This document shows positions 21,246 to 49,050 of a stretch of DNA of 64,000 nucleotides, in pieces. Source of the stretch: Fonticula alba ATCC 38817 (taxonomy: Eukaryota; Protista; Nucleariida). The position numbers were made by a program, and so were the translations under genes. Each line of letters opens with the position of its first letter. Position 1 is the first letter of the stretch. Under the pieces are notes generated by a model. The model did not search any database. It was not told the DNA's origin and saw nothing but the letters and a program-made list of their open reading frames with translations. The stretch is from NCBI GenBank assembly GCA_000388065.2, contig KB932208.1; one strand, written 5' to 3'.

Positions 21246-21297
<52 letters not shown>
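21040..21297. repeat. Microsatellite cluster: (GCACAGCC)n, (CA)n and a 50-nt poly-C
   Basis: Seen directly; poly-C spans 21248-21297. Confidence 0.9.
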
Positions 21298-23933
21298 TGC
21301 CTATTCCGCTAGTCCGCCAACTACCTCCAATCCAAAGGCTGTTAGCGACCGGATGTGCGATTGATTGGTACTTGGCCTGCCACAAACATTCGCTCCCTGT
21401 GGGGCGGATGGCGTGCGCCATCCTGGCGGAAGAATTCCTCCGGCGCTTCTGTGATTGCGGCGACTTCCCATTGCGGACTGCCCGCGGGGGGCTCCCTCCG
21501 CAGCTGGCACAGGCCTCCGTGGCCACGCATGCGCGCCGGCGAGTTGGTCCTTCGAACGGGTATCATCATTCGTCGGCGCCCCGTCCTGGGCTGACCCGAC
21601 CCCGAACGCCGGGCGGGAATTTCCACACGCCCCCGCCCACCAGCCTCACCCGCCCCGCTGGCAAGGAGGGGCGGCTGCTACCCCGTCTTGTGCGCGTGGC
21701 CTCCCATCGTCATTTTCCGGATCGAGTGGGCTCTCCCCTCGGGCGAGTTGGCGACCGGTCTGACCCCCGCCTATTGGCTGCCGCTCAGAGCCATCTCCCC
21801 CCCCCCTCCCCGAGCCGGTGCCCGACCTGAACACGGGCCAGCTGGTGGCACCCCGGCAGGGATCGACCGAAGCCGGCTCGGTCCGGCCCCTCGANNNNNN
21901 NNNNNNNNNNNNNNNNNNNNNNNNNNNNNNNNNNNNNNNNNNNNNNNNNNNNNNNNNNNNNNNGGTGCATGGGTCTTCCCCGCCCGGCCCGGCCGGCCTT
22001 TGTTATTCCGCCAACATCAGGGCGACCCACATCAACACGGACTTCGTTATAACCCCCACGCGCCACTCGCCGGAATGAGCCCAAGCAGGGGAGAAGGCTC
22101 CGCCCTGTTGAGGGCCGCCAACATTATCTTCTGCCAAAGTATCTCCCGACTGAACGATCACGCCGGTGTCCTTGGGCGCATACTATAGCCACAGAACAGC
22201 GAGTATCGCTCTGGCACGTGGTCCTGCGCCCGAGGCATGACCATGCCGGCATCGACGGGCATGTGAGCCGGAAATTGGCTGTTCCCTCGCAGCCCATCCC
22301 CCGGGCCGATCCTGCCTGGCGGCGCCCAAGAGATGGCTCCCAGCGTCGTCCGGCCACCCCCTTTGCCGGCCGCAATGATGGTCCCCCCGGATCCCATGCA
22401 CCACGGCCCCCCTCCGGATGTGCCCTGTCCAAAAGGACAGACTCGCACCCATATACGTGAGCCCAGCATGGTCGCTGGTGCCTCCGGGCTACCGTGCAAA
22501 CATCGCTGCACAAGGCGTGTGCCCCCCCCGATGCCCACCTGCTCCCGCCATCGCCCTCCGCGCGTCCATGGCCCATGGCCCATACCCGGGAGCCGGGCAC
22601 CTCGCATCCTACGCGCATATATGCATGGGCCCCTTTGGCAGCTCCAAAAAGCCGGCCATGTCTCCACACTCGCCTGCGTCTGCTGGTCGTCCTCCGTCGG
22701 GGCTGGGATTCCCCCAAGCGCCGGGGCAGCTAAGTGGCGCGTGCTGCACATCAGCCGCCTGGGCAGAGTGTCGGCGCCGACGTCGGATCGATGAACGTCC
22801 GGGGGATGCTGTCTCCCAGGCCGCGGCCCGCCCGGCGATCGGGCCCGGCGTTCATCCGCGCATGGAGGCGTTGGAGCCGGTCTGTCCGTCTCTTCCCCCG
22901 AGGCAGGCCCATGGTGGGCACGCGCACGGCAGCAGGCAATAGGGCCGGCCCTTGTGGTGGCGAAGACAGGCCACCTCGGCCGCCGGCTCGGCACTCGCCT
23001 CCAGGGAGGCCCGCCTACCAGGACTCACCGAGCGGTCCAAGGAGCATGGCTCGAGCCACGAGAGGGGGGCAGTGAAAAAAAAAAAAAACAACAACCCAAC
23101 ATCCTTGTGCCTGTGCCCCTCTCATGGCCGGCACCACGGCCTCCCCAATCCGGGGTCGCCGTATGCCCGCGCGAGTCCCCTGCAAACACCTTACCACCGC
23201 ACGCCCCCATCCCCCGACGGCCGGCGCCGGCGCCGCCGCCCAAGCATGGCCCATTTCGCTGGAGGCCCTCGGACGATGGCCCCTGAACCGGTTGCGGGCG
23301 AAGGCGCCACGACGGCAACCAGGGAAGCCCACCCCCGGGCCAAGGTTCCGCCGAAACCACCGCCCCCCTACACACTTCCACATGCCGGGTCCCTGTGAGC
23401 CAGGTGTGAGGCAGCACCGACCTCCCCCGGCCGGACGGGGCAACGCCCGGGGTCAGGCGGCGAAGTGCGCCTCTGTACGGGGCGGAAGAGACGCTCGCCG
23501 ACGATGCGGCAGGTGGCCGTGGCGGACCAGCGCGCCCGAGGAGCAGCCCCCCCCCCCCCATGCACCCCCCGGGTGCCGGAGCTGAGGCACAGCCAAGACA
23601 CCGAACCCCGAGGAGTCCCGCCAGCCAGCCAGCGCGCAAAGGCCACGGGGCAGACAAGCGCCCAGGGAATACGCTTCGATGCCGCGTAGACCGCCGCGCT
23701 GGTGCCCACATGTCGCGCGTGTAGGACCAGGCCACTCGGACATATCAAAGGACTCGACCCCGATATCGGGGCGGTCTGCTGCCCGGAGCACCACGGGCGA
23801 GGTGTCCCCTGGGACAGTGCTCAATCAACGTCCCAGTCCGGGGCACACCCCGAATCGAGGACCGGGCCCGCGAGGCAATACGCCGCATCGGAGGACATGC
23901 CTCAGGCGCCCCTGCGCGGTGTTCTCTCTCCCT

Positions 23934-25173: not shown

Positions 25174-25246
25174 TTCCCATACCGGGACTCGAACCCGGGT
25201 CTCGTGGGTGAGAGCCACGTATCCTAACCACCTAGACTATATGGGA
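25174..25246 (-). tRNA. tRNA-Glu(CTC), second copy
   Basis: Exact reverse complement of the tRNA at 15720-15792; a T-run lies downstream on the minus strand; flanks are unrelated. Confidence 0.95.
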
Positions 25247-25821
25247 GGTCATATCGGATCTCGACCGTAGGCACCTCAAATGCCCACGATGTGGGGCTGC
25301 CGCCGGATCTCGTCCGCCCCTTCGCCCGAACTTCGCGCCGGCCATGCGGCGGTGCGGATTCCTCCCTGCCAAGAACCATGGCCATCCCCAGGTGTCTGCA
25401 CCGACGACGGGGTCCGTGTGCCGTGTGCGCGCCGGCCACAGCGGGGAACGGCCCGCACAGCCGCCGGGCCTCCCCCCGGCATGGAAAAGCCGAGGCGTGT
25501 TTTTGTGCACGGGCCGTCCCCAGGGTGTTTCTTGTCCTGGACGGGGGCCGAGCCGCCTCCCGCCGCAGCGGACGCACCCCTCCCGCCCGACAGTGCGTGC
25601 GCCACACATGGCAGCTGTACACACTGGCCGCGGCCGGGCACACATGGCATTCTGCACGCCAAGCGGGCCCTTTCCCATTGCTGCCTCATCCAAAAGGGCA
25701 GGGCCGCATGCCCCCCCCCCCCCCCCTCCCCACCGCCTTTTCATCCGTCGCACGCATGCACAACCACGGCAGGAGGCTGCCGAGAAAAAGATGCCACGCC
25801 CGGGGCAAAAAGTGAAGGATG

Positions 25822-25903
25822 CATCACCGGCAGGATTTGAACCTACGCGGGCAGAGCCCATCCGATTTCTAATCGGACTCCTTAACCACTCGGACACGGT
25901 GAT
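25822..25903 (-). tRNA. tRNA-Ser(AGA)
   Basis: Reverse complement ATCACCGTGTCCGAGTGGTTAAGGAGTCCGATTAGAAATCGGATGGGCTCTGCCCGCGTAGGTTCAAATCCTGCCGGTGATG: 82 nt, long variable arm, anticodon AGA, discriminator G. Confidence 0.93.
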
Positions 25904-28279: not shown

Positions 28280-31030
28280 CTACCGGCGCCCTGCACGCAG
28301 CCCGCAAGCCCCCATGGCCAAAGCCCGATTGGTTGCCCTGGCGTCTCCCCCCTCTCCCTCACGCACATGCACACACACACACACACACATGCGCCAGGCA
28401 GACCGGGAAAGCGCGACCATGCATGGGCGCGTGCACAGACACACACGCTCAGGCACTCGTGCACGCAGACACACACGCACAGACACTCGTGTACGCAGAC
28501 ACTCGTGCACAGACACACTCTCACACGCTCTCACACAGACACACTCTCACACAGACACACTCTCACACACTCTCACACTCTCACAACCACTCTCACACTC
28601 ACACAACCACTCTCACACTCACACACAGGCAGGTCTATATCTTCACAAGTACGGCTGACACTGGCGCAGCCGATGCAGCGTGGTATGCGCCAGCTCGCTG
28701 GCCTGTTTCATGCCAATCCCCGGGTTGGCAGCCAGCACACGCGAAACTTCAAACGCATGCGCGCACGGATGGTGCGCATACATCGGCGCCCGGAAGGCAT
28801 CGCCCTGCCGGGCACGCAGCGAATTCACCACCTGCGGCAGGGTGCACCCCAGGTCCGCGGCCACCTGGTGCAGCAGCACCGGCCGGCCGTGCCCGGTCAC
28901 CGCCGCCAGCAGGGCCGGCACCTTGCGCTCCGGCACGAACATGCCCCCCGGCCCGGCCCCGGCCCAGGGGGGCTGCGCCAGGAAAAAGTACTCCGGGCAA
29001 TACCGGTGCAGCATGGAATACACCCGGTCCGGCGGCAGGCCCATCTCCCGGGCCAGCTCCCGGACCGTGTACCGCATGCGCCGGGGCTTGGTCGGGTGGA
29101 CCTCCGCCGCCAGACGCCGCAGCCGTCGGATGCTCGCCGGGGGCAGCTCCAAAAACCGGAACCCATACTGCCACAGCCCCTCCAGGCCGCCCCGGCCCAG
29201 GTGCTGCCGCAGGGTGGTCTCCGACTCGTCCAAGTGGTCCACCAGCTCGGCCAGCAGCAGCGGCGGCCGCAGGGCCAGGGCCAGCAGCTCCTCCGGCAGC
29301 CCCGGCCGGTACACGTCCCCGGGCTCCGGCGGCGGCCCCGGCCGCTGTGGTCGCCGGCCCCCGCGCGTCCGCCGCCGCTTGCCCTCGGCACCCGGGCCCG
29401 CTTCCGGGCCGTGGTCGGGCTGGTCGGCCGCCGGCGCCGACAGGGCCCCCTGCCCCGCCGGGATCGCCTCGCCATGAATCGGCGACCCGGCTGGCAGATA
29501 CCGGCGCGCATACTCGGCCAGGGTCAGCCGCCCGTAATCCGCCGGCCGGGTCAGCTGCCGGATCGGCTGCTCCGCATTGTGCGGGATCACCGCCTCGGGC
29601 AGGAGCCGCGCCAAATGCCGGCGCACCACGCGCGCCGGCACCCGCAGCACCTGCGCCGCCCGGGCCACCGTCAGCCGCCCCGGCTCGGCGGCCAGCAGCT
29701 CCTGCAGCCGGGCCACACCCTCCGAGTCGAGGTCCCTCCCCGACAGGCGGGTCACCTGCTCGGTGTACAGCGCCGGCCCATGCGCGTCGAAGGTGGTCTG
29801 CTCCAGCCGCACCAGGGGGCTCGGCCCGGCCTGCGACACCGACCCCGTCACCAGGACCTCCCGCAGCCCGGGCAGCCGATCCACACGCACGCGCGGCACC
29901 ACCAGATCCACATACTCCGGCAGGTGGGCCGCCAGGGCCTGGGACACCTCGCGACGAGGCGCCGACAGCAGCAACGCCATGTGGTCCAGGGCCAGGGCCG
30001 GGGCCACGGTGCACAGCGCCCGTAGGCGGGCCATGCTCAGCCGGCCCCCGGGCTCCGAGGCCCGGCCCATGGCCTGCGGCAGGTGCAGCTCCAGCAGGGC
30101 CGCCACCTGCCCCCGGTCCAAGCCCACCAGCCGCCCCAGCAGCGGGTTCGGAATGGGCGGATCCCGCTGCGCCAGCGTCGCCAGGTCCTCGAATGCCGGG
30201 TCCCCGGGCCGGACCTCGGGCCGCGCCTGGTCCGACGGCCGCCCCGGCCGGCCGATGGCAAACCTCGGCCCATACCGCGCCAATAGCACGCGCACCGACG
30301 CGCGATCCATGCCCAGCAGTCGGCCCATGGTGGCCACCTCGACCGCCGGCTGTGACAGCCCCGCCAGGCGCAGGAACAGCCGGAAGTCCGCCACGCTGTC
30401 GAACCCCTGCGGCAGGGGCTCCCGGCCCTCGGCGATGGCCCGGCACAGACGCTCCCCGCGCCCGGGGGCCACCGCTCGCGGCGGCTCATCCCGGCTCCCG
30501 GCCCGCCGGGCGGCCCCCCCCATGCCGGGGGAAGGCCCGTCAGGGGTGGACAAAGTGGCCCCGGCATTGGCCACAGCGAGCCCGGCGCGAGGACCGGTCC
30601 GACCATCGGCCGGAGCCTCGCCGGCAGCGATGGGAGCAGCTACCGAGCCGGGATGCGGGCCCGGCCGCCGGTCGGCCGGCAGACCCCCTCCCCGAGTCAC
30701 ACCCGGCAGATGGCCGGCAACATCGTCCAAAGAGCGGGGAGTCGCGCCCGCCGAAGGGGGCTCTCGGTCGGCCGGGGCATCCCCCCGGCCGGCAGTGCTA
30801 CCCGGGCGTTCGGCCGCCCCATCCCCGCCACATCGATCCGCCACGCTCCGACGGCGTCGCTGGTCTTCGCCGTCCCGCCGACCGGCAGCGCCCTGGTCGG
30901 GCTCCGGCCGGCGACGCCCGGCCAGCTGGGACCACCGATCGCCAGATGGCCCGGGCACCCGGCCCGTTGACATGGCACGGCTGCCTACCACCAACATGCG
31001 ACCAAAGGCCACGCGGGTGCATGTCAGCAT
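28280..31030 (-). CDS. Unrecognised protein with ~8 tandem tri-helical HTH-like modules and a mitochondrial-presequence-like N-terminus
   Basis: Long ORF (part of 28643-31606) with repeating motifs such as [62 protein letters not shown]. Likely start [22 protein letters not shown] (ATG at 31030 or 30997). A possible CA-rich intron 28652-28338 joins in frame to a last exon ending at 28280; if unspliced the stop is at 28643. Confidence 0.75.
28360..28630. repeat. Degenerate CA/CT microsatellite inside the predicted intron
   Basis: Runs of CACACA, CACACTCT and CACAGA units. Confidence 0.85.
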
Positions 31031-31743
31031 TGACAGGGATGCGCGTCCAGGACCGAGGGGGGCACGTTCAAAAGGCCGGGGGGACGGGCAGGCAGGGAAA
31101 GGAGAAAGGAGGCAGGCACCGGACAGAGAGAGAGAGAGAGAGAGGGCGCGGAAAGGAAGGGGCAAGCTACATGCCAAGTCCCGAAGGGGCAGCCATGCCG
31201 CGTCCCGCGCGCTGATAAGTCCCCCCTGCCTTCTTTGCCGCCTCCCGGCCCCGGCCAGAGCCCATAACCACGTAAGCGGTCCGAGGGCCCGGCCGCGGCC
31301 CCATGCACCGATCGCCCGATCGCTCGTCCCGCTGTCCCCCCGCCCCCCGATTCGGGGGCGCACACACGTGTACACACACACACGCACACACGCAAGGCGC
31401 CAGTCCCCCAGGCTGGCTGGCAAAGAACCGGGGCCGGTCCGGGCTGTGCGTGGGCACCTCGTCCAATCTGAGCACCAAGGCTTCAGCCGCTGTCCCCCGT
31501 CCCCCCCGCCCCCGGACCTCCTATCCCGTCCAACGCCTCGACACTGACACGACGGCCAAAAAAGGCGGCAGGCGCGGCACATTTGTATTTCTGGCGTCCC
31601 AGCCACGGCGCGGCACCAGCGCTCCCGGCGCCCATGGCCGCTTGGTTGACGCCATCAGGAGACGGCCACCAGGGGGGGGAGGGGGGGCTCGCTCTACGCG
31701 ATGGCACCCGCCCCCCGCCCGCGGCAACATGTGTGGGGGTCCT

Positions 31744-34280
31744 TCAATTTCCGGGCGTCAGGGATTTGAGCCACGCCTTGGCCGCCGCATGGATGTCCTT
31801 GGTGTGTTCCCGGTTTCGGGCGTACACGCGCAGGCGATACTCGATAAAGGGGCCGTCCAGGTCGGGCAGCGGCGTGTCGCGGGGCAGCAGCAGCAGCTCT
31901 TCACCCCGGCAAGAGAGGAGGCAGTCAAGGGGAGGAAAGAAAAGAAAAGAAGGAAGCGGCGAGGCCTCCCCGTGTTAGATGATGCACAGCGGGAGAGGGG
32001 CCCAGCCGAACGCGCGCACATGTGCCCGTTTTTAAGCACGTACTGTCCGGCTTGTCCTTGGAGAAGAAGAGCACCTTGACCATCGGGTCGTTCTCCTTGT
32101 CACCGTGGTGGATGGATGCCAAATCCACATGGAAATCGTCCCTCTTTCATGGCGCACACCGGGAGGGTGAGACGTCTTTCCGGCCGGATGCATGGCGGAG
32201 GGCAGAAAGAAGGGGAAGGACAGCGAAAAAAAAAAAAGACAAAAGAAAACACACGACCGGGGCAAGCAGGTCGCGCGTCAGCCCGCCCCCACCGGCGAAC
32301 ATACCCGGAGCTTCTCGGTGCTGTCCTTCTCAAGGATCTGGTTCTTGAGCCCATCCTCCTTGGCCGCGCGGGTCTGATACAGTTTCCGTGTTGTGAATCC
32401 CATCGGCGCACCGGGAGACCGACCTTCAGGTCAGCAACAGCGCCCGGGCCATGAGGCGGAAGGGGCCCGCTCCGATCCCCCCACACCCCCCCCCCCCCAC
32501 CCCCCCCCCCCTTGCACATGCGGCGTACGCACCAGATCCCGGTACAGGGTCCTGTTGTAGAACACCTTCTCGAAGGCCAACTGATAGAGGTCGCGCTTGC
32601 GGATGCGCTCCACCAGGCCCCGGGCCTGGGCCATGCTCTTGAAGTGCTCGGACTCGCTGTTCTTGTCGCACGGCTCCGGGTCGCCACACATGCACCGCCA
32701 GCCGTGGGCCGCCGACGCGGCAATCTGGTCCAGGATGCCGTCGGTCAAGTGCACATACATGGCCGGGTTGTGGACCATGCTTGAAATGCGCAGGGCCCCG
32801 TCGGCCTTCAGTAGCGCATCCACCACCATCAGGTTGATGGCCTCGGCTGCATGTGCCATCGCGGGGGGACCGAAGTCCAGAGGTACACGGGAGTACACAG
32901 AAGCATGGAGAAGCAGAAAAAAAACCCCAGAAGCACGCAGAGACAGACAAACACACAGATACACACATACATGACGGCGGCAGCGGGTTAGAGATGCAAC
33001 AGCCACACGGCAAAGCAGAAGCCATGGCCCATATGACGCACAGACGCGATGCGTGTACACATGCTTGAACAGGTTGAAGCGCGTCTGGAACATCAGCCGC
33101 AGGTTGGGGAACTCCTTCTCCGGGAAGGCGATCTGCCCCTCGACAATGCGCGCGCTGTTCACCAGGCGCATGGGGTTGTACGCGGTCTGGGCCCCGGCAT
33201 TGTAGGTGTCCCGGCGGAAGTAATCAAACCGGTCCACATCGATGCCGGTGTCGTCATTGGCCACGATCTGGAAGAGGAAGCGCACTTCCGGCGAGGCATA
33301 CCGCTTCAGGCTGGCCGGCACGTCGGCCTGAGCGCGCAGGCCCTTCCCACTGTCGATGACGGCCTTCACCAGGCCCGGGCTGAAGGGGATGTCGCCATTC
33401 TGCTTGGACTTGAGCCACATCAAGCCATCGGCATCCTCCTGAAGACCCAGGTACCGCAGCAGATCGTCGAGCATGTCCACCGACCCTTTCTCATGCGTCC
33501 AGTGGTCGCCCTTCGGCGCGTCGCTGGGTCATCCCATTGTCCCCGGTCATCCCGCGCCCCGCGCGCGCGCGAGCATCCACCGCCCACAGCATGGTGTTAG
33601 TATGCCCCGGCAGAAGGAAGCATCCCCCCCCCCCCCGCCCCCTGGCCCCATGTGGCCGAGTGCAAGCGCCCACACACACACACACACACACACGTACACA
33701 GCCCGGAGCATGAAGTTCCCATCAAACAGGTGGCTAAAGGGCCCGTGCCCCAGATCATGGCACAGCCCGGCGATGATCAGGCTGGTGCGTACTGCCAGGA
33801 AGTCCAGCCCGGCGAAGGCCCCCGGCTGCGTGGCCCACAGCCGATCCACCAGCGTCCGGGTCAGATGGCCCACCCCGAGCGAATGCTCGAAGCGCGTGTG
33901 CGCCGCGCTCGGGAACACGTACGACGTGATGCCCAGCTGCTTCAGGCCCCGCAGCCGCTGGAAGTGCGGCGTGTCCACGATCTGGAAGAAGTACTGCCCC
34001 CGGTCGGTCGGCACGACGGGACCAAAGGCCCAAGCAAGGGCACGAAGGAAATACATGACCACCATCAGCACCGGGCCCAAGAGGAAGGTGGCACATCCGC
34101 CCGCCCGCGTGGAGGCGCAGCAGGGGAGAAGAGGAAAAGGACACATGGGGCGAGCGAGCGAGCGAGAGAGAAAGGCAGTACCTCTTCCAGGGCGTAGTCG
34201 TTGTGGATGCTGTCGTTCAGAGTGCGCAGCTCATGGTTGATGGACACCCCGGGAGGGAGGGGCTCGGACTTGGAGACCAT
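31744..34280 (-). CDS. SAMHD1: SAMHD1-like HD-domain dNTP triphosphohydrolase, paralog A (multi-exon, no SAM domain)
   Basis: Spliced exons give [117 protein letters not shown] and [10 protein letters not shown], matching the ordered motifs of SAMHD1-family enzymes. Confidence 0.92.
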
Positions 34281-35167
34281 GGCCGAGGGTGTGCGTGGAG
34301 AGAAGGGATGTGCGTGTGAATGTGTGCACGCGCACGGGAAAGACCGAAAGAAAGAGGCAAGATGGAGTGAAATCCGATGCCAGGCCACGCCCGGGGCCCC
34401 AGCGTCATTTATATGCCGCCCTTGCCCCGGGCCATCAGGCGGACCGAGGCCGGCGCCCGGGCGATCGAGCGACGGGCCGCCCCCGGGGCCTCGCCGGGCA
34501 GATCGCTGGCCCCGCCCCGCCCCGTCCCGCCCCCCAGTCGCGTCCATCGCCCTCGCGACTCATGCGGCCTGGTGTGTGCTGCTCGGGTTTCGTGCCTCCG
34601 GCCGGCCCCCCGCTCCGTTCTCGGCAAAGAGCAAACACCCGGGGCGCGCCAGGCGTGTGTCTGGCGCCATTGGCCCCCCCCCCCCCCCCCGCCGCCGTCG
34701 TCCGACCAGCCAATGTGCGTTCGGCCGGTAGACACACAACAAACGCCGGTAGGCCCCCGCCCCGAGGCACGTGCATCAACGCCCGCCGAGCCCAGTATAT
34801 TTACTGCCCAGGAGGAGCCGACCGCATGATGCCAGCGCACGGAGGGACCATCCAAGGCAGGCACACACATCCAGCCCCCTGCCGACCCCTGCGGGGGAAA
34901 ACAAACAGAGCATTTTCGCGACGCGGGGTCGTGGCCCCCGTATCATGAGCCGACGTCGTCGGTCACATGCACCCATGAGCGCCGGACCCCCCGATTGGCA
35001 CCGGCATCAAGCACCAGGCCCACGGGTCGGCCATGCTCAGAGGGGCCATGCTGAGAGCCCGCCAGGCGAGAGGCATTAATTCAGAACAGGGAGCGTGTCC
35101 GCGGCGCCTGCCTGCGGGGGGTGTGCGCCCGCGCCGGGGCACCCCGCGGTCGGCCGCCGCGCGTGGC

Positions 35168-37665
35168 CTACCGGCGAGGCGCCGCCCCTTGGGCCCGGGT
35201 TCTCTGGTGCTCGAACCACTCCCTCGTCGCCTGGTGGATGCGGGCCTTGTCCTGCTTGTTGCGCACATACACGCGCACTCGGTACTCCCCGAAGGGTCCC
35301 TTGAAATCCGACGCGACACTGCCGGACCTGTCCAGCAGCCCTTTGCGCGGGGGGGGGCCGGCCATTCGGTCGATGGTTCGGTCGATGGTTGAATGTTGAT
35401 CGAGTCGATGGTCCAGCCAGTTGTACAGTCACCCAAGCGGCCAATCGTTCGGTCAGTTGTCTAGCCAGTTGCTTGGCCAATCAGCCGCTCGCTTGGCCAT
35501 TGCACAGTACGATGCACCTCCCCCCTCCACAGCCAGAGGGCCGCCCACGGCCAAAAGGCGGTCACCCGCACGCCCCCATCCCCTCGGCCGCGGAGGACGC
35601 ACTGTCCGGGTCTTCCTTGCCGAAGAACAGCACCTTCCGCATGGGGTCCTCCGCCCTGGCCCCATGGTGAATGGTGGCCAGCTGCACATGCATGTGGTCC
35701 TGCGCGAGCGGCACCCCCCGTCGAGGCAGGCCCGGTTAGCCGGGCACACAATGCGGCCACCGTGGCCCGTCACCTGCAGCGTTTCCCCGCCCTCCTCGCC
35801 CGCCCGGCCCGCCGCGTGTGTCACACCTACCATCGCCGGGTCCGCTGTGCTCTGGAGGATTTCGCTCTTGAGTGCCTCCTCGCCAATGGCCGCCAGGTGG
35901 GCGCTCTGCACCCGGCCAGCCATCGGCCACCGGCCGCCGTCCAGGTCAGTGAAATGCCCGACCGCCGCCTGCGAAGAGCCCGCCGCCCGCCCTGCCCCCC
36001 ACACCCACGCACATGCGCGGGCATGTGCAACACGCGCACCAGGCTCCCATGCAGCGCATGGTCATAGAACACCTCCTCGAAGGCCAGCTTGTAGAGGTCG
36101 CGCGTGCGGATGCGCTCGACCAGGGCCCGGGCCCGGGCCATGCCCTTGGCATGCCGCGACTCGCGGTTGTCCGCGCAATTGTCCCGGGCGTCGCACTGGC
36201 ACCGCCACCGGCGCGTGCCCGACGCCGCAATCTCATCCAGAATCCCATCATTCAAGTGCATGTACGCCGCCGGGTCATGGATCATGCTGGAAATGCCCAG
36301 CGCCCCGTCGGCCTCCAGCAGCGCGTCCACCGCCATCAGGTTGACGATCTCCGCTGCAATGGTCCCCGGGCCCTTGCGACGCATTAGTGCCCGGAGCCTC
36401 CTGCCGGTGGATCGTGCATCTCCCGCCCCCGCCCCCCGCCCCCGCCTTGGCCTGGACCCTGACGACACGCACACACCCGGTGCGTGTACACCTGCCTGAA
36501 CAGGCTGAAGCGCGTCTGAAACAGCAGCCGCAAGTTGAAGAACTCCTTCTCCGGGAAGGCGATCTGCCCCTGGACAATGCGCGCGCTGTTCACCAGGCGC
36601 ATGGCCACGTAGCTCACCTGCGACCCGGCGTTGTAGGAGTCCCGGCGGAGGTAGTCAAACCGGTCGACATCCACCCCGGTATCGTCGTTGGCCACGATCT
36701 GGAAGATGAACCGCACCTCGGGCCTGGTGTATGGGGCCAGGCTGCCCGGGGCAGGGGCCAGCCCCCCGGGGCCGCCGGCGATGATGGCCTTCACCAGCTC
36801 CGGATGGAAGGCTGCCGGCGCGGCCCGGCCAAAGGTCACCACCCCCTGGGCATTCGGCTCCAGACGCAGGAACCCGAGCAAATGGTCGAACATATCGACC
36901 GAGCCCTTTTCGTGCCTCCACGCCGGCGCCCGGGGGCGGCCATCGGCCTGGTGCCGGGCGCTGTGCCGGCCATGTGCCCACATCGGGCCCGGCGCCCGCC
37001 CGATCTCGTGCATGGGGTCAGCTTGGTTGCCTCGGGCATGGCGGATGATGGGCCGCGCCCGGAGGATGCCCCGAACGCACGCGGCCCGGGGGAGGAAGTT
37101 CCCATCAAACAGGTGGCTAAAGGGCCCGTGCCCCAGGTCATGGCACAGCCCGGCGATGATCAGGCTGTTGCGCACCACCGGGAAGTCCAGCCCGGCGAAG
37201 GCCTCCGGCTGCGTGGCCCACAGCCGATCCACCAGCGTCCGGGTCAGGTGGCCCACCCCGAGCGAATGCTCGAAGCGCGTGTGCGCCGCGCTCGGGAACA
37301 CGTACGACGTCACGCCCAGCTGCTTCAGGCCCCGCAGCCGCTGGAAGTGCGGCGTGTCCACGATCTGGAAGAAGTACTGCCGCCGGTCGGTGGCCCGCGG
37401 CCGCCCCCCCCCCCGGCCACCGCCGTGAGGGTACACCCGCGCGTCAGTGTACGCCTCCCTAAACACCCATGCGGCTGGGCTAGCGCGTGTTACACCCCCC
37501 CCCCCCCCATCGGCCACCGGTCCGAGGTACCTCCTCCAGCAGATAATCCCCATGGATGCTGTCATTCAGGTTCCGGAGTTTGTAGCGTGGCTGCCGCCCG
37601 GCGCGGTCGCCGTCAGGAGCCTCCACTCGCACGGCCGCCGGCCCTGGCATGCCCTCAGCCGTCAT
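35168..37665 (-). CDS. SAMHD1: SAMHD1-like HD-domain dNTP triphosphohydrolase, paralog B (multi-exon, no SAM domain)
   Basis: Same motif series as paralog A ([80 protein letters not shown]), with introns at homologous positions. Confidence 0.92.
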
Positions 37666-39217
37666 GGTGTTTGTACTTGGTGCTGTGCCTGCCGCGCGTC
37701 AATGGTGTGGCGCGCCGGTGTGTCAGAGGGATGGGCGGGTGTTTGAGCGTGAATGCGTTCGCGAGACAGGGGCCAGGCAGGGGAGGAGGAAGGCCGATTT
37801 TTCTGGGCCACTCACATCCCAGCAGGGCCTCCTCGCTCAAGTATCCCGCGCCGCGCGCCCCTCCCCCTGGGCCCCTCCCCCCGGCGTGTGTGTGTGTGTG
37901 TGTGCGTGGCGCCCGGCCGCCCCTCGCCGCACGCTGGCCGCCGAGAGTGCCCCACGCCAGGGGGCTCCCGGCGCCCCAGCCGAGGCTCGCCTCTCGGCTG
38001 ACAACCGCCCGGGCGCCCTGCCGTGGGTTGTCATCGCGGGGCGGAGTGGGGAAAGCAAATAGCTAAGCCCCCGACATGGGGCCGGACGCCCCCCCTCCCC
38101 CGTCCCTTCCCCCTCGGCGTGCTACCTTCGTGCTTGCACGGCCGCCGGCAGAGCCGCCCATCGCCGCACGGCATGGGCCATGCTTCTCGGCAGGATGCAG
38201 CGACACCACGCAAAGGGGGCACCCGAGCCGGCCCGGCGATCGGGCCGACCCTCTCTGGCCCGCAGCGGCGCCGGCCACCAGCCAGCCATCAATTGTGGGG
38301 TGACACATTGTCCGATTTCCCCCCCCGGCGGTCGACGACGCTCGTCGGGTGGGCGAAAGGCACGGGGATCAGGCGCGGCGGCCCCGTGGACGCTCACGTG
38401 CCACCGGCGGGTTAAGACCGGGCGCGGCCGTAAACCCACCCTGCCCTTGGTTGGCTTGTTGCAGCCGCCGCCGCCGCCGCCACCGGAGAACGCCCGGCCG
38501 TGTTTACCACACTTTGTCAGAGGTATTCAACATTCCCCCCCGCCCAGCGGCGGGTCCCGCCGCAAGGCGCGGCGCGCGAGGCTGCCGAGGCCGGGGCCCC
38601 GGGCCGTCGGTCGGGCCATGCCGGTCGGGCTTGGGCCGGGCGTGCTCGATCGCCCGGAGAAGGGCCCCTGTCCCCTCGCGCCCCCCCCCCCCCCCCGATC
38701 GGGGCTTCGATCGGCGCCAGATCGCGCAGCGCCGATCTCCCTCGCGGCACGCCCCTCCCTCCGGCCACCCGGCACGGCCCGGGCCTCCTGCTACCGCCCA
38801 AGTGGCTGCGACAGGGCCCCACAGCAGGCAACGAGCCCTCGCGCGCCGGCCACATCTGCCGGATGTCCCCGGAGACGGCATCGCATTGGGAAGGGCATAT
38901 CGCCCCGGCCACCGATCGGCCGGCCTGCGGGTCGCCCTCATCTGCGGGGCTGACCGTCTCTGCTGCCCCGGGGCCCCCCTTCCCCCTGCCAGGCGGCCCC
39001 GGGCGGCTCCTCTCGGCCCCGGTCATGCCTCCCGCCCGGGGCAGCGCATGCGAGGGGCGTGTTCTTTTTGGGTGCCCAGCCCGACCCCCACCGCCTGCTC
39101 CTCCCCCCCGCAGATGGCACCGCCCTCCTCCCCTCCTCTCCCCCCCCCCCGCCCCCGCCCCCTGTTTGTGCCCCGTCCCACCTGTCGGGGCCCATTCGCT
39201 CACCCCCCGCCCCCCCC

Positions 39218-42200
39218 ATGGTCGGCCGCCACCCTCGTCCCAGGGCCCCGCTCCTGGGCATCCTGCTCTTGCTGCTGCTGCTGCTGCTGCTCCGGCCCGG
39301 CACATCGGGCGCCCTCGCCCGACGCGGTGTCTCCCCCCCGGGCCCGGCGCCGGTGTCCCTGGCGATGGCCGACGCCCCGGGACCGGCCAGCCCCACGGCC
39401 GACCCGCCAGCATGCCACCCCACCTGTGCCCAGTGCTTCGGGCCCACCGGGCAGGACTGCCTCCGGTGCCCGGACGGGCGGGCCCTCCACCAGGGGGCCT
39501 GCCTGCCGGCCTGCCCGGCCGGCTTCTTCCCCACCCCCTCCACCGAGGGCACCCTCTGCCGGAGCTGCCACACATCGTGCGCCGGCTGCATCGCCTCGGA
39601 CGCCGGGGCCTGCACCGCCTGCCAGCCGGGGCTGGTGCTGCTCGAGGGCCGGTGCCAGCCCGGGGCCTGCCCGGCCGGCACCTTCCCCGACCCGACGTCC
39701 GACAGCGCCCCCTGCCGCGCCTGCCACCGGTCGTGCTCCACCTGCACCGGGCCGGATGCCGGGCACTGCCTCTCCTGCCCCGGGCATGCGGTGCTCACCG
39801 GCGATGGGGCCTGCCGGCCGGCCTGCCCGGCCGGGCACTACCTCTCCCCCGATCGGGTGCCCTCCTGCCGGGCATGCCATGCCACGTGCGCGGCCTGCCG
39901 GCACGGCCAGGCGGCCGACTGCACCGCCTGCCCGGCCGGCCGCCAGCTGTCCCTCGGCCGGTGCGTGTCCCCCTGCGGCCCGGGGGCCACCCTCCACCAG
40001 GAGGCCTGTGTCGCCTGCCATGCCTCCTGCACCGAGTGCTCCGGCCCCGGGCAGGGCCACTGCCTGGCCTGCTCGGCGGGCCTCTGGCTTGGGCCCGATG
40101 GCCGGTGCCTGGGCCAATGCCCGGCCGGGTGGTTCCCCGAGCCGGCCCCCGGCCGCCGGTGCCTCGCCTGCCCGGCCCCCTGCGACCAGTGCGTCAGCTC
40201 CACCGAGTGCACCGTCTGCCGGGCGGGCTGGCAGCTGGACCCGGGGTCCAGCACCTGCCGGCCGGCCGCCGGGGCCTGTCCCCAGGGCCGGTACCCGGCC
40301 GCCGGCAAGTGCCTCCCCTGTCACCACTCATGTCGCGCCTGTTCCGGCCCCTCGGAAGCCGAGTGCCTCCTGTGCCCGGCGCACCGGGTGCACTGGCCCG
40401 GCGCCGGGACCTGCCCGCTGGTCTGCCCGGCCGCCGAGTATCTGGAGTCCGGCGACCCGCCGGACCCGACCGGCCGCCGGTGCGCCCCCTGTGCCCGCGG
40501 CTGCCGGGCCTGCGCCGGCCCCTCGCCCAGCGCCTGCTCCCAATGCCAGGCCCCCTTCCTGCAGGTCGGCGACCAGTGTCTGGCCTCCTGCCCGGCCGGC
40601 TTCATCCAAGTCCCGGACCTGACCCAGCCGGATGTGGCCTCCTGCCGGGCCTGCCCGGCCCCCTGCACCGCCTGTGTGGCGGTCCTCCAGCAGGCCGGCG
40701 ACCCGGCCTGCCTGGCATGCTCCCCGGGATATGCCCTGGTGCCGGCCGCCCCGGGCGGCCCGGGGTCCTGTGTCTCCTGCCCGGCCCGGTGCCTGGAATG
40801 CTCGGACCCGGCCCGGTGCCACCGGTGCGAGGCCGGCTTCCAGCCGGACCCCTCCTCCGGGGCCTGCCTGCCGTCCTGCCCCCCGGGGACCTGGTTCCAC
40901 CCGACGGCCCGGGCCTGCCAGCCCTGCGCCGGCCCCTGCGCCCGGTGCCTCGACGCCCCGGACCACTGCACCGCCTGCACCCCGGGCACCTACCTCTCGC
41001 AGGGCACCTGCGCCGGCTGCCATGCCTCCTGCTCCGAGTGCCAGGGCGAGGCCGCCTGCACGGCCTGCGCCCCGGGGCTCGTCTTCCCCGGCCCCCCCGG
41101 GCAGTCCCTCTGCACGGATGCCTGCCCGGCCGGGCAATTCGCCGACCTCCCGGCCGGCCGGTGTTCGCCCTGCGTCGGCCCCTGCGCCGAGTGCCTCGGC
41201 GCCGCGGACCGCTGCACCGCCTGCCTGCCCGGGGCCTTCCCGGCCGGCGGCACTTGCGCCGCCTGCCACGGCTCCTGCGCCACCTGCCCCGGGCCCGAGG
41301 CATGCGCCACCTGCGCCGAGGGGCACCTCTTCGCCGGGGCCCCCGGGCAGTCCCTCTGCCTGGCGGCCTGCCCGGCCGGCACCTTCCCCGACTCGGCCGC
41401 CGGCCGGTGCACCCCCTGCCATGCCACCTGCGCCGCATGCACCGGCGCCGCGCGGCAGTGCACCGCCTGCGCGCCGGGCTTCCGCCCGGAGGGGCCTTGG
41501 TCCGAGGCCGGCCGGTGCGTGGCCTGCCCGGATGGGTGTGCCGGCTGCGACGCGGCCGGCCGGTGCACCGCCTGCGCGCCCGGGCTCCAGCTGACCCCGG
41601 CCGGGCAGTGCGCCTCCGACTGCCCGGCCGGGCACTACCCCCAGGCCGACGCCTGCCTGCCCTGCCACGAGTCCTGCGCCTCCTGCTCCGGGGCCCGGGC
41701 ATGCGGCACCTGCCAGCCGGGGCTCGTCTTCGCCAGCCCCGATGGCCTGCCCTCGCTGTGTGTCTTCTCCTGCCCGGAGGGGCACTTTGCCGACCCCCAG
41801 TCCGGGCGGTGCGCCGCCTGCCATGCCTCCTGCGCGGCCTGCACCACCGCCGCCGGCCAGTGCACCGCCTGCGCGCCGGCCTTCCGCCCGGAGGGGGCCT
41901 GGTCCACCGCCGGCCGGTGCGTGGCCTGCCCGGCCGGGTGCGCCGCCTGCGACCCGGCCGGCCGGTGCACCGCCTGCACCGGGGCCCTGCTCCTGACCCC
42001 GGGCGGGGCCTGTGAGTCGTCCTGCCCGGCCGGGCAGTTCGCCGCCTCCGGCCGCTGCCACCCCTGCCGGGCCCCCTGCGTCCAGTGCATCGACACGGCC
42101 GACCACTGCATCACCTGCATCCGCGGGACCTTCCTCCGGGAGGCGGTCTGCACCGCGTGCGATGCCTCCTGCGCGGCCTGCTCCACGGCCCAGGCCTGCA

Positions 42201-45200
42201 GCACCTGCGCCGAGGGGCACCTCTTCGCCGGGGCCCCCGGGCAGTCCCTCTGCCTGGCGGCCTGCCCGGCCGGCACCTTCCCCGACCCGGCCGCCGGCCG
42301 GTGCGCCCCCTGCCATGCCTCGTGCGCGGCCTGCACCACCGCCGCCGACCAGTGCACCGCCTGTGCGCCGGCCTTCCGCCCGGAGGGGGCCTGGTCCGAG
42401 GCCGGCCGGTGCGTGGCCTGCCCGACCGCCTGCTCGGCATGCGACCCGGCCGGCCGGTGCACCGCCTGCACCGGGGCCCTGCTGCTGGCCCCGGACGGCA
42501 CCTGCGCCTCGGCCTGCCCGGCGCACACCTGGCCCGACACCGGGGCCCGCGTGTGCCGGCCCTGCCAGGCCCCATGCTCCCGGTGCACCGGGCCCCGGGC
42601 CTGTGTCTCCTGCCTGCCCGGCACCTACCTCGACCGGGACGCCTGCCTGCCATGCGACGCCTCGTGCGCCGCCTGCCCCGGGCCCGCGGCATGCGACACC
42701 TGCGCCCGGGGGCTGCTCTTCGCCGGCGAGCCCGGCCACTCGCTCTGCCTGGCGGCCTGCCCGGCCGGCACCTTCCCGGCCGTCGACCGGTGCGCCGCCT
42801 GCCATGCCACCTGCGCCGCATGCACCGGCGCCGCGCGGCAGTGCACCGCCTGCGCTCCGCGCCACCGGCCCGAGGGGGACTGGCCGGCCGGCGGGGCCGG
42901 CGGCCGGTGCGTCCCCTGCCCGGCCGCCTGCACCGCCTGCGACCCGGCCGGCCGGTGCACCGCCTGCGCGCCCGGGCTCCAGCTGACCCCGGCCGGGCAG
43001 TGCGCCTCCGGCTGCCCGGCCGGGCACTACCCCCAGGCCGACGCCTGCCTGCCCTGCCAGGCCCCCTGTGCCGAGTGCACCGGGCCCGGGCACTGTCTCT
43101 CCTGCCCCCCGGGGGCCTTCCTCCAGCTGGACACATGCGCCGAGTGCGATGCCTCCTGCGCGGCCTGCTCCGACGGCCGGTCCTGCGATGTCTGCCGGCC
43201 GGGGCACTTTTTCGCCCGGCCCGCCGGCCTGCCCGGCCTGTGCCTGGACGCCTGCCCGGCCGGCTCGCTGCCGCTGGCCGGCCACTGCACCCCCTGCCAT
43301 GCCTCGTGCGCGGCCTGCGCCACCGCCGCCGACCGGTGCACCCGCTGTGCGCCGGCCTTCCGCCCGGAGGGGGCCTGGTCCGAGGCCGGCCGGTGCGTGG
43401 CCTGCCCGGCCGGGTGCGCCGCCTGCGACCCGGCCGGCCGGTGCACCGCCTGCACCGGGGCCCTGCTCCTGGCCCCGGACGGCACCTGCGCCTCGGCCTG
43501 CCCGGCCGCCACCTTCCCCCACGACCGGGCCGTCTGCCTGCCCTGCGACCCGTCCTGCTCCCGGTGCACCGACGACCAGGCCTGCCTCGAGTGCGCCCCG
43601 GGGCTGGTCTTCCTCTCGCCCGACCCCGGGGCCCGGTCTCTCTGTGTGGGCACCTGCCCGGCGGGGTTCCTGCCCGAGGGCCCCCGGTGCCTGGCCTGCG
43701 TGGCCCCCTGTGCCCGGTGCACCGAGGCCCCGGACCGCTGCACGGCCTGCCTGCCGGGGCTCCGCCTGGCCGAGCCGGCCGAGCTGGCCGCCCAGCCGGC
43801 CGCCCAGTGTGTCCCCTGCCCGGCCGAGTGTGCCGGCTGCCTGCCGGACGGCCGGTGCACCGCCTGCCCGGATGCCCCGGGCCCCGGGGCCCGGCCGGTC
43901 TTGTCGCCCTTCGGCCGATGCCTGGCCCACTGCCCGGCCGGCTGGTATGCCGACCCGGAGGCCGGCCGCTGCCGGCCCTGCAACGGCTCGTGCGCCACCT
44001 GCTCCGGGCCCTCGGCCTGCGACACCTGCCAGCCGGGGCTGGTGTTCCTGGCCCCGGGCGCCCGGCCGGCCGAGGCCCCTGACCCGGCCCCCCCCGGGCC
44101 CGGGGGCACCCTTTGCACGGACGTCTGCCCGGCCGGCCAGGTCCCCGGCCGGACGCCCGACCCGGCGGCCAGCCCGCAGTGCGTCCCCTGCGCCGGGGCC
44201 TGCGCGACGTGCGTCCACACCCCGGACCAGTGCGTGGCCTGTGCCCCCGGGCACCGGCCGCACACGCCCCACGACCTGCCCGGCGCCTGTGTCCCCTGCC
44301 CGACCGGCTGCCACGACTGCCTGGACAATGGCCGGTGCTTGGCCTGCCTGCCGGGCTCCGGCCTGGTGTTGACCCCGGCCGGGCGATGTGCCGCCGCCTG
44401 CCCGGACGGCTGGTTCGCCTCCGGCCACGGGCACTGCCTCCGGTGCGCCGACGAATGTGCCACCTGCACCGGGCCGCTGCCGGCCCACTGCACGGCCTGC
44501 CGCCCGGGCGCCAGCCTCCTGCCGGCCCCCGGCCCCGGCCACTGTGCCACCCCCTGCCCGGCCGGCCACTTCCGTGATGACACCTCCCCCGAGTGCCGGG
44601 CCTGCCACCGGGACTGTGCCTCCTGCACCGGGCCCACCTCGGGCCACTGCGTCGAGTGCTCGGCCCCCGGCCTCCTCCAGCTGGATGGCCACTGTGTGGA
44701 CGCCTGCCCCGACAGCTTCTTCCCCCAGGCCGGCCGCCGGTGCGTCCGGTGCCATGGGGCCTGCCACGCCTGTGCCGGGCCCGGCCCGGGGGACTGTCTC
44801 TCCTGCCCGGCCGGCCTGGTGGCCCTGAGCCTGGTGGCCGCCGGCCGGCCGCGCGCTTGCGGCAGCTTCTGCCCGGCCGGCTCGGCTCTCGACCCGGAGG
44901 CCGTGGCCTGCCGCGCCTGCCCGGCCGACTGCCCGCAGTGCGACGCCGCCGGCGTCTGCCAGGCGTGCGGCCCCGGGTGGCTGCTTGCCGCCGGTGCCCC
45001 GGCCTCCGCCGGCATCTCCGCCCCCCTGGCGGGCCCGGGCCCGGGGCCGGGCCCGCCGCAACCCGCATGCATCCGCGGGCCCGACTGTCCGGCCGGCGCC
45101 GCGCCGCACGGGACCCGGTGTCTTGCCTGCGCCGCCGGGTGTGCCACCTGCGCCGGGCCCGAGGCCGACCAGTGCCTCACCTGTGCCCCGGGCTTCGACA

Positions 45201-46489
45201 CGCCCTTCGAGGGGGCCTGCCTGGCCGCCTGCCCCCAGGCCGGGTACTTCCCGCATCCGCGCACCGGCCAGTGCGTCGGCTGCCATGCCTCCTGCCTCGC
45301 CTGCACATCCATCCAGGAGGACGCCTGCACCGCCTGTCCCCCGGACCATGCTCTCTGGCAGGGCACCTGCCTGGCCGCCTGTCCGGCCGGCACCTTCCGC
45401 CAGGCCCCCGACTCTCCGGACGCCTCGGGCTCTTCGGGCCACCAGGACGCCCCGGGCTCTTCGGGCCACCAGGACGCCCCGGGCTCTTCGGGCCACCAGG
45501 ACGCCCCGGGCTCTTCGGGCCACCAGGACGCCTCGGGCTCTTCTGACCACCAAGGCGCCCCGGCCCCCCCCGGCATGCAGGACGCCCCGGTCCCCTCCGG
45601 CTACCGGTGCATCCCCTGTGACTCGGAGTGTGCCGGGTGCGAGGGCCCGGGCCCGGGCCACTGCACAGGCTGCCCGGCCGGGCGCCTGCTCGGGCCCGAT
45701 GGCCATTGCCTCGACGAGTGCCCGACCGGCTTCGGGCCCTGCCATTCGGACGGCCGGTGCATCCGCTGCCCGGCCGGCTGCGCTCGCTGCCAGCCGGCCC
45801 CGGACCAATGCCAGTCGGGCGTCTGCCTGGCCTGCCAGCCCGGGCTCTTCCTCGGCCTCGACAGCCAGTGCCACGACGCCTGCCCGGTGGGGGAGTTCCC
45901 GCCGGCCAGCGTGCCGGGCCAGTGCTTCCAGTGCGCCAAGGCGTGCGCCTCCTGCGCCTCCTCGGCCGAGGCGTGCACCTCCTGCGCCGATGCCGACCAC
46001 TGGCTGGTCCTCGGCACCGGCGAGTGCACCCGGGCGGCGTGCCCGGAAATGGGCTTCGCCACTTTCCACGACCCGGCCATCGGCCGCGTGTGCATCCCCT
46101 GCCATGTGGCCGGGTGCGAGTTTTGTTCCCTGCCTCCGGCTGCCGACCCGGGCTGCCGGCGTCTGGCCGACCGGGGCATCACCTGTCCGGACCTTGACCG
46201 CTGTGACCGCTGCGCCTCCGGGCGAAGCATCCTCCCCGGGGGCCAGGCCGCCGACCAGTGTGTGCTCGCCTGCCCCGGGGGCTTCTTCAGCTCCTCCACC
46301 CCGGGCAGCGGCGCCCTCCGGTGCATGAACTGTGCCCCGGGCTGCAACCACTGCCAGGGGCCGCTGCCGGTCGACTGCCTCGACGAACGGCCCGAGCCCT
46401 CTTCTCGGCCGCTCGGTGCGTCGCGCCTCCCCCGTGTCTGTGTTCCCCCGCCCGGGGGCGCGACCTCCGCGTATCTCCCTTGCCTCATG

Positions 46490-46522
<33 letters not shown>

Positions 46523-46578
46523 CTCTCCGAGCACAAATGACGAGCTAACAGACCCCCACACTCGTCCACCCACCCACC

Positions 46579-46634
<56 letters not shown>

Positions 46635-48552
46635 GATAAGCCCTTGGTCTCGGCATCGGCATCGGCTCCGCCCTGCTCATCCTGCTGATCATCGGCGTCA
46701 TCGTGCTGGTCATCGTCCGGCGTCACCGGGCTCCACACTTGCTACTGCCCAAGGTGCGCCGGTCTCCCCCTGCCTCGCCCTTTTCGCGCGCCTGCAGCCG
46801 CCAGCCCAGCCCATGCGCATGAGGGATGCCCACCCTGGTTCACTGACGCTCTCTGCCCGATGCCACAGACCACTGCCCCGGATTACGGTACGCCGTCGTC
46901 TCGGCTTCTGTTTGAGCCTTTCGCCCGGTCCACGCCGCTGCTTTGCCTTGCTCAGTCTTCGGGTCTCTTGCTCTCCTGCCCCCTTTCTCTCTCTCACACA
47001 CACACACACACGCACCCACACTCTGTCTCCCGCCCTCCGCCCCTTCCCCCTTCCAAAACCCAGACGCGACGGTCCTTAATACCTTGCCGGAGCTCAGCAT
47101 GCCCGGCGCGGCCCTCGTCTCCGCCGACTACGACTTCATCCCCATCGAGGAGGGCAAGCTCGGCGAGGGGGCCCAGGCGTCGGTTTACTCGGCCCGCGTG
47201 GTCGGCGACGGCCTGATCTCTCGACTCCGCTGCCCGGCCATCGTGGCCATCAAGCGCAGCAAGGGTACGCTCCTCCTCCTCCTCCTCCTCACCGGGCAAT
47301 GCCTCCCCCCGTCCCTCCCCCCGTGACGCCATCCGCTGACCGGCGCCCGTCCCTGTGCCAGAATCCATCCAGGACGACCTTCGCGACTTCCTCTTCCAAA
47401 ATGAGATCTCCCTCATGTGGTCCGTGTCATCCCCATAACCGCCTGCCGCCGTTCTCTGGCCCTCTCCGACCGCATGCGCCCGCCCGGGTGCTCTCCCTCG
47501 CGGCCCCACACCCACACATGTGCACCAGTGCTTACACATAGGTCGCCCCTCGCCTGTGACTCGCATCCCCTCGCCCCGGCCTCCCGCGCCCGGCACAGGC
47601 TCGCCCGCGGCCAGCCCAACATCGTCCAGATCTTCGGGTACTCCGAGCGCCCGCAGGCCCTGATCATGGAGAAGTTCGACTCCTGCCTACAGACGCTGCT
47701 CTTCTCCGGCGTGGCCCTCGCCATGGACGAGTCCCTGGATCTCATGGCCGACGTGGGTGCGTGGTCGCTCCCATGCCTGGCCCCCCCTCCCGCTCCTCCC
47801 CCTCCCGCGCGCGCGCCCCCTCGCCACGTGTCCCNNNNNNNNNNNNNNNNNNNNNNNNNNNNNNNNNNNNNNNNNNNNNNNNNNNNNNNNNNNNNNNNNN
47901 NNNNNNNNNNNNNNNNNNNNNNNNNNNNNNNNNNNNNNNNNNNNNNNNNNNNNNNNNNNNNNNNNNNNNNNNNNNNNNNNNNNNNNNNNNNNNNNNNNNN
48001 NNNNNNNNNNNNNNNNNNNNNNNNNNNNNNNNCCCTGTGTTGGTGGGAGAGTGCGCGTGCGAGGGGGGACAACTCCAATGCCCTGGTACGTATGCACACC
48101 CCAGCCACCGTACTGTCGCTGGCCTGTCCTTGTCTGCTGGCCTCCCCCCCCCCCCCTCCCCTCCTCCCCCGTCCAGGCACTCACCCCTTCTCTCCGCCTC
48201 CGGCCGGTGCAGAGCCTGCGCGCCTTCGAGACCCAGCAGCCCATCCTCCCGGCACTCTACCTCCAGTCGGATGTCTACTCCACGGCCGTGCTCCTGTGGG
48301 TGATCCTCGCCCGGCGCGCCCCGTCCCATGGTGCGTGTCCAGCACCTGTCTTCCTGCCCCGGGCGCTCGCCCTCCTCTCCCACCTTCGGGCTGGGCGTCT
48401 CCCCATCTGGCCGCACTCACATGGCCTGCTCGGTGCATGTTGGCCCACTCACCCACTCACCCACTCACCCACACCTCTACACCTCCACACCTCTACATAC
48501 ACTCACCCACTCACCCACTCACCCACTCACCCACTCACCCACTCACCCACAC

Positions 48553-49001: not shown

Positions 49002-49050
<49 letters not shown>

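Follow-up and report, generated by a model that had tools for sequence, protein, structure and literature searches.

We suggest that two adjacent genes of the protist Fonticula alba (Rotosphaerida, an order that is sister to fungi) may well each encode a structural Cys3His metal-binding knuckle, most likely one that holds Zn2+, within proteins that are, by family, SAMHD1-type HD-domain deoxynucleoside triphosphate (dNTP) triphosphohydrolases. The two genes, A and B, lie in tandem on the minus strand of a 64,000-nucleotide (nt) stretch of scaffold KB932208.1 (assembly GCA_000388065.2), which in its full length is referred to here as the window. Both copies read W-R-C-x-C-x5-C-x7-H with identical spacing even though 10 of the 19 motif residues differ between them, as an initial annotation made from the DNA alone had observed, and the four candidate ligands are retained more strictly than neutral change would predict. 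Metal binding, the kind of metal and a mainly structural role are all points that we infer.

The motif and the genes that carry it

The motif is encoded on the minus strand, at 32644..32700 in paralog A and at 36151..36207 in paralog B, and at both places the C-x-C-x5-C-x7-H pattern announced in the initial annotation is matched exactly. The flanks quoted with it, HL.DGILD.I upstream and AR.LVERIR.RDLY downstream, are likewise present in both copies, and the plus strand at the same coordinates gives unrelated peptides with no motif. In paralog B the minus-strand translation of 36207..36151 is WRCQCDARDNCADNRESRH. In paralog A the four residues are Cys196, Cys198, Cys204 and His212 of P0001, a public variant of 356 amino acids (aa), or Cys344, Cys346, Cys352 and His360 of the full-length product, P0179 (504 aa). 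Between the anchors HLTDxI and RDLY there are 56 residues in A and B versus a canonical 34, which upholds the claim of an insertion where human SAMHD1 has only a short loop: 22-23 residues take the place of the human turn S433-P436. As delimited by alignments against this canonical turn, the insertion runs over 32641..32709 on the minus strand in A (23 codons, AHGWRC...SEHF) and over 36148..36216 on the minus strand in B, where it has the same 23 codons and no indel. The human numbering used here and below was anchored through PDB chain offsets and cross-checked with residues N295, Y299 and R320 of the enzyme of Rhizophagus.

Gene A (H696_04690) occupies 31744..34280 on the minus strand, with its start codon at 34280 and P0179 as its product; the exons of P0001 are, on the same strand, 33474-33043, 32844-32533, 32373-32305, 32143-32045 and 31896-31747. 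Gene B (35171..37665, minus strand) lies 3.4 kilobases (kb) upstream in the same orientation, and its annotated coding sequence (CDS), 37665..35562, yields a 542-aa product. No assembly gap falls inside either gene. The two motif-bearing exons, 32844..32533 in A and 36351..36040 in B, are equal in length and phase, and each has an AG acceptor and a GTGCG donor. Together with two bases of a split codon, their 104 in-frame codons extend over 32533..32846 in A and 36040..36353 in B, both on the minus strand, and those of A are an exact map of P0001 residues 146-249. The public spliced model of P0001 has the very junctions inferred from the DNA, in five exon blocks on the minus strand. In the searches reported here, gene B and the N-terminal exons of A were used exon by exon, and gene A was otherwise represented by its public spliced models.

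This gene structure bears directly on the idea that the segment is an artefact, either an in-frame mini-intron retained in the models or some other mis-annotation, which we consider hardly tenable. The genes do hold in-frame introns free of stop codons, and GTGC-like strings occur inside the segment, both of which speak for such an error. The segment, however, measures 69 nt in both copies and aligns without an indel at 62% nucleotide identity, whereas the true upstream intron differs in length (195 nt in A, 130 nt in B) and gaps make up about half of its alignment columns; this difference between an equal-length, indel-free segment and a poorly alignable intron rules out a retained intron. 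Moreover, the segment is coding in the public spliced model, any GT...AG span inside it is shorter than 40 nt, and AlphaFold models it as ordered.

Some further remarks on the gene models are in order. The introns of both SAMHD1 genes, being in frame and stop-free, produce spurious open reading frames (ORFs) on the minus strand at 32431-33480 (349 aa) and 36387-37565 (393 aa); such read-through of GT...AG introns can mislead gene callers that work from ORFs in this GC-rich genome. The annotated CDS of B runs through a likely donor (...KEDPDSASSAAEGMGACG*) to its end at 35562, and beyond this annotated stop, within 35428..35171, lies a coding stretch, GPFGEYRVRVYVRN...EWFEHQ, with homology to the final exon of A. 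The public model of gene B is probably mis-spliced at its 3' end. P0001, which is an N-terminally truncated public "variant" of A, begins at Met149 of P0179 (position 33474 of the window); it is without the H...HD part of the catalytic motif and retains the C-terminal lobe and the Cys3His loop, and would hence be a catalytically dead isoform, if the isoform is real.

The assignment of A and B to the SAMHD1 family draws on domain, sequence and fold comparisons. Pfam HD (PF01966) is matched by the HD exons of A and B at 30.5 and 32.2 bits (cut-off 22), and in phmmer searches P0001 matches Rhizophagus SAMHD1 (PDB 9MR6) with an E-value of 3.8e-35 and human SAMHD1 with about 1e-25. A Foldseek search with the AlphaFold model of P0001, which has a mean predicted local distance difference test score (pLDDT) of 89.3 and a predicted template modelling score (pTM) of 0.85, returned 9MR6 and human SAMHD1 with a probability of 1.00 and TM values of 0.64-0.74. 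Judged by its residues, the enzyme core of A and B looks functional. The catalytic H...HD...D residues, including DVDRFDY, are present in P0179 and in the exons of B, and the guanine-specific residues of allosteric site 1 (AL1; human D137, Q142 and R145) occur in P0179 at human spacing, as N-x17-D-x4-Q-x2-R, the D, Q and R being invariant in the family alignment. P0001 R229 aligns with human R451 and Rhizophagus R320. The roles of the AL1 residues are known from the human enzyme, where R451 and K455 contact the triphosphate of the neighbouring subunit's guanosine triphosphate (GTP) activator (PMC7045340). At allosteric site 2 (AL2), the alignment has R333, K354 and N358 kept, R352 replaced by Pro and K523 by Arg; conservation of AL2 is weak outside vertebrates and plants (PMC12042053). 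A SAM domain is absent, only about 20 residues standing ahead of the core in P0179, and lack of this domain is normal for SAMHD1 proteins that are neither of vertebrates nor of plants (PMC12042053).

Conservation, distribution and origin of the insertion

Translated, the motif exons of A and B are 63% identical; their DNA alignment contains no indel and gives a synonymous divergence (dS) of about 0.5. Omega is 0.35 in the flanks versus 0.78 in the insertion, where nine residues (W, R, C, C, C, N, E, S and H) are invariant and the other fourteen have all changed. Given nine conserved positions among 23, the probability that all four ligands would be found among them is 0.014 (0.033 if only the 19-mer is counted). 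When mutation was simulated at the synonymous divergence, the neutral probability that C, C, C and H would all be kept came to 0.003-0.009, and to 0.0005-0.0025 when the Trp was included. The suggestion that selection has kept four potential ligands is supported by these post hoc tests on two sequences. The codons of Cys2 (TGT/TGC) and of the His (CAC/CAT) differ synonymously between A and B, which means that the identity of these residues has been held at the protein level and that no fresh conversion tract is present; recent gene conversion can therefore be ruled out as the source of ligand identity. The motif cysteines are also the sole cysteines of the 356-aa P0001 and of both motif exons, the only other one in the recognised exons being the family-invariant cysteine of GLCHDLGHG. 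For randomly placed residues, the probability that the three cysteines of P0001 would cluster within 9 residues is 0.0013.

An exhaustive HMMER search of 1.84 billion representative sequences yielded 2207 relatives, and the distance between the anchors was measured in the best 150 of them. The canonical spacing of 34 residues is found in 95 of the 150, and about 40 others have unrelated insertions, 36-136 residues in extent, at the same site, which is thus an insertion hot spot. The C-x-C-x5-C-x7-H motif occurs in none of these best 150 relatives of a representative search, in which orthologs more than 50% identical to P0001 would hide within its cluster, and three cysteines at this place are found solely in A and B. 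To the question, raised at the outset, of which lineages carry the insertion, the family alignment answers that the full motif is confined to A and B among these 150. Near relatives that can be named come from chytrids, Blastocladiella, Basidiobolus, basidiomycetes, a jellyfish and fish. Word searches of sequences clustered at 90% gave no close ortholog; the exon region returned only itself and P0001 only five distant relatives. The motif exon used alone as a query for short fragments found no match, and a scan of metagenomic DNA with the A/B exon alignment found no relative. One metagenome contig with a degenerate motif and an R-D-L-Y pattern (L001) was rejected as a chance match, with a stop in frame and unrelated bacterial ORFs.

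No SAMHD1 with the motif is present in the PDB, where the alignment of 9MR6 covers both flanks and passes over the segment, and we found no literature on SAMHD1 in Fonticula or on a zinc module in SAMHD1. The initial annotation had not recognised the insertion from any described SAMHD1, and in the PDB, the best 150 relatives and the literature found we do not meet it either. Going by the sequences compared, the Cys3His insertion is lineage-specific and not a general property of SAMHD1.

Fonticula has a third SAMHD1 paralog, P0007 (H696_00980), which is unlinked to A and B, lies on another scaffold and is the best match to P0001. The initial statement that both SAMHD1 paralogs share the motif stands for A and B and does not extend to P0007, which is without the full motif. 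In P0007 the loop at this site is likewise expanded and counts 73 residues between the anchors, versus 56 in A and B. This loop, at about residues 311-385, reads C-x11-C-x21-H, with a filler rich in Ala and Ser and about 18 extra residues. Its R-C, Q-C-D and S-P-H(-A) align with Cys1, Cys2 and His of A and B in all three MAFFT modes, the first of the three standing at the start of the loop and the last directly ahead of the following helix. A quick tree, from which an occupancy filter dropped the insertion columns and in which long-branch caveats apply to A, makes P0007 the sister of A with an SH-aLRT (Shimodaira-Hasegawa-like approximate likelihood ratio test) support of 95 and branches of 2.45 for A versus 0.81 for P0007. 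The protein is overall much more conservative than A, and its 8 cysteines are spread along its length.

We posit that the loop had probably already expanded, with Cys and His at either end, before the split from P0007. The compact C-x-C-x5-C-x7-H arrangement, on the other hand, is on our reading of these alignments restricted to the A/B lineage, which evolves fast, and predates the tandem duplication that separated A from B. Relative to the A/B motif, the loop of P0007 may be intermediate or degenerate.

Possible roles of the Cys3His loop

The initial annotation had located the insertion on the regulatory lobe, and its surroundings agree with this, for on one side it adjoins the dimer patch (L428/Y432) and on the other the AL1 helix with R451/K455. 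In the human enzyme, L428 and Y432 of the upstream helix form a hydrophobic dimer patch (PMC3882887). Downstream of the insertion is the equivalent of the human helix with R451 and K455, which serves the GTP activator site of AL1. In P0001, S189 ends the first helix, the insertion takes up residues 190-213 or thereabouts, and H212 stands on the first turn of the helix 211-227.

The loop is predicted by AlphaFold to be ordered in A as well as in B, though just two sequences in the alignment cover the insertion. In P0001, residues 191-200 score a block pLDDT of 83 and residues 201-210 one of 87, and the segment is predicted to consist of coil, a short helical turn at Cys204 and a long helix from residue 211. 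Exon B, folded alone, has block pLDDT values of 82, 77 and 80, with a helical turn that ends at Cys59 and a long helix that starts at residue 66, one before the His. The predicted topology is the same in A and B despite substitutions at 10 of the 19 motif positions, and such a topology is the usual arrangement in small zinc sites.

We propose that the Cys3His knuckle would staple the base of the expanded surface loop that caps a helical hairpin. The two arms of this hairpin would be the dimer-patch helix (human L428/Y432) and a helix that closes with the arginine (human R451; P0001 R229) contacting the neighbouring subunit's GTP activator. The C-x-C pair would come after the end of the first helix, the short helical turn would bear Cys3, the second helix would have the His in its first turn, and a single ion held by all four ligands would tie the helix ends together and keep the loop ordered.

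It is also quite possible that there is no metal site, and that the insertion is a relaxed surface loop whose Cys, His and Trp residues were kept by chance, by shared ancestry, or for the sake of a disulfide, a protein contact or a modification. A number of observations lean in this direction, and so weigh against a metal-binding knuckle. The omega of 0.78 in the insertion is near neutral, so that the loop appears free to vary apart from its nine invariant residues. The conservation statistics were computed post hoc from two sequences of a single genome, and searches of protein and metagenome data for a second rotosphaerid or any other-species ortholog returned none, which leaves just these two carriers. 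The site is an insertion hot spot, and because other lineages tolerate unrelated insertions of as many as about 100 residues in the same loop, an insertion there needs no function. P0007 has neither a partner for Cys3 nor the spacing of A and B, so Fonticula SAMHD1 can do without the full ligand set. Furthermore, no Pfam family, metal-binding or other, is matched by either motif exon or by the bare 36-residue segment, and the segment has no significant PDB match. Against a loop without metal stand the low neutral probability of keeping the four ligands, lower still with the Trp, the gathering of all cysteines of a 356-aa protein within 9 residues, and the confidence of AlphaFold in the loop of both copies. 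Structural disulfides, besides, are uncommon in intracellular enzymes, and this too counts against it.

The same location invites the thought of a regulatory switch, in which the hairpin tip would change shape as the cysteines are oxidised or the metal is lost or gained, and would thereby alter the assembly of dimers and tetramers or the binding of GTP at AL1, a control that would be convergent with that exerted by human C341, C350 and C522. We regard this as rather unlikely. It is consistent with a loop that is flanked by the dimer-patch positions and the AL1-arginine helix. P0001 has V, A and A where the human enzyme has C341, C350 and C522, and since it has no cysteine besides those of the motif, these would be the sole thiols available for such control. 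Non-vertebrate SAMHD1 proteins lack the redox cysteines and, according to a 2025 paper on a fungal enzyme, may use "alternative mechanisms" (PMC12042053). Against a switch, the loop accepts long unrelated insertions elsewhere, which suggests that it faces the solvent and not an interface; the His lies 17 residues, or about 25 Å of helix, from the AL1 arginine; and the dimer-patch positions are D184 and A188 in P0001, so that the patch residues are not conserved in Fonticula. We likewise hold it unlikely that the loop senses metal or redox state and acts as a switch at the tip of a hairpin by which dimer interface and GTP activator site are connected, and that Fonticula would thus have independently evolved a thiol-based control of SAMHD1 in another place than vertebrates. 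Were a switch nonetheless to exist, the truncated P0001 isoform could act as a regulatory subunit.

The ligand set C-x-C...C...H also brings to mind a 3Cys-1His iron-sulfur site, as in the [2Fe-2S] proteins of the mitoNEET/CDGSH type, or a Cu(I)-thiolate site in place of zinc, both of which we think very unlikely. The CDGSH motif likewise opens with C-x-C and closes with a His, and Cu(I) sites commonly contain C-x-C. The spacing C-x-C-x5-C-x7-H nevertheless differs from that of CDGSH, which is C-x-C-x8-C-x3-H, or more fully C-x-C-x2-(S/T)-x3-P-x-C-D-G-(S/A/T)-H, in a domain of some 39 residues. There is no Pfam match to zf-CDGSH or to any other family, and a loop of 19 residues is too short for the dimeric NEET fold of about 39. 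On the other side of the scale, the chemistry of fungal SAMHD1 is linked to iron (PMC12042053). Membership of the CDGSH family is ruled out for the segment by its spacing and by the lack of a Pfam match. Membership of the CCCH zinc fingers was also considered and discarded: Pfam zf-CCCH is not matched, a match of A to ZAP is non-significant, and there is none for B.

Surrounding features and known counterparts

Just downstream of gene A, a 987-aa ORF on the minus strand at 28643-31606 has weak helix-turn-helix matches (HTH_23 at 27 bits, others below cut-off) and an annotated product of 795 aa. On the plus strand, 39059-46540 is an open frame of 2493 aa with cysteine-rich furin-like/VSP repeats (Pfam VSP 8e-20, Furin-like_2 1e-14). 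It contains tandem repeat arrays of 246 and 492 nt (40921-43546) and a 27-nt repeat (45418-45563), and its annotated product of 2707 aa has faint protein-kinase matches too; this VSP/furin-like giant may be receptor-kinase-like. Seven tRNA genes stand in three groups, at 13713-15792 (Ala, Asp, Glu), 25174-25903 (Glu, Ser) and 49321-49955 (Gly, Phe), with tRNA-Glu(CTC) present in two copies among the seven.

The window also contains two perfect homopolymers, a run of 50 C (21248-21297) and one of 66 G (58123-58188), and many microsatellites of the CA/AC type, both intergenic and intronic (for example 28436-28625, 46581-46633 and 49004-49049). Assembly gaps, seen as runs of N with a total of 2030 bases, are located at 574-971, 14653-15366, 16132-16278, 21895-21963, 47835-48032, 56991-57423, 62835-62844 and 63593-63653. 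An apparent region of low GC at 14-16 kb is caused by one of these gaps and is not a biological feature.

SAMHD1 sets dNTP pools, and in vertebrates it is regulated by allostery, by phosphorylation and by a cysteine redox switch. A Cys3His module between the dimer-patch and GTP-site helices would be the first candidate for an alternative regulation of SAMHD1 outside vertebrates and plants. It would also be a compact natural case of a metal knuckle built within an existing loop expansion, with P0007 as a possible intermediate. If the knuckle is just a structural staple in one protist, its interest would be modest and mainly evolutionary.

Short Cys-rich motifs that open with C-x-C, such as those of Hsp33 (C-x-C...C-x-x-C) and of CDGSH/mitoNEET, can couple metal occupancy to redox state. 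The Fonticula loop differs from these in spacing, fold and context, and no sequence similarity to them was detected. The CCCH finger of ZAP (PDB 6L1W, 3U9G) has C-G-x-P-x-P-C...E-H-F in common with paralog A, at the same C-x5-C-x7-H spacing; the resemblance is non-significant (E 0.33-0.7) and absent for paralog B, and we treat it as an analogy only.

The best solved relative, and the top Foldseek match, is the SAMHD1 of Rhizophagus irregularis (9MR6), a holomycotan like Fonticula. This enzyme has no SAM domain and none of the human redox cysteines (PMC12042053). Its residues N295, Y299 and R320 map onto residues that flank the Fonticula loop. Unlike A and B, it has the canonical short turn, with no Cys or His there, and its alignment skips residues 45-70 of the motif exon. 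With human SAMHD1 (e.g., PDB 3U1N, 4BZB and 7UJN), Fonticula A has in common the family and fold, the catalytic residues, the AL1 residues and the equivalent of R451. It differs in having no SAM domain, in the V, A and A that stand for C341, C350 and C522, in the Pro that stands for R352, and in the Cys3His loop that replaces the S433-P436 turn. Human SAMHD1 is controlled through its cysteines, and the Fonticula enzyme may be too.

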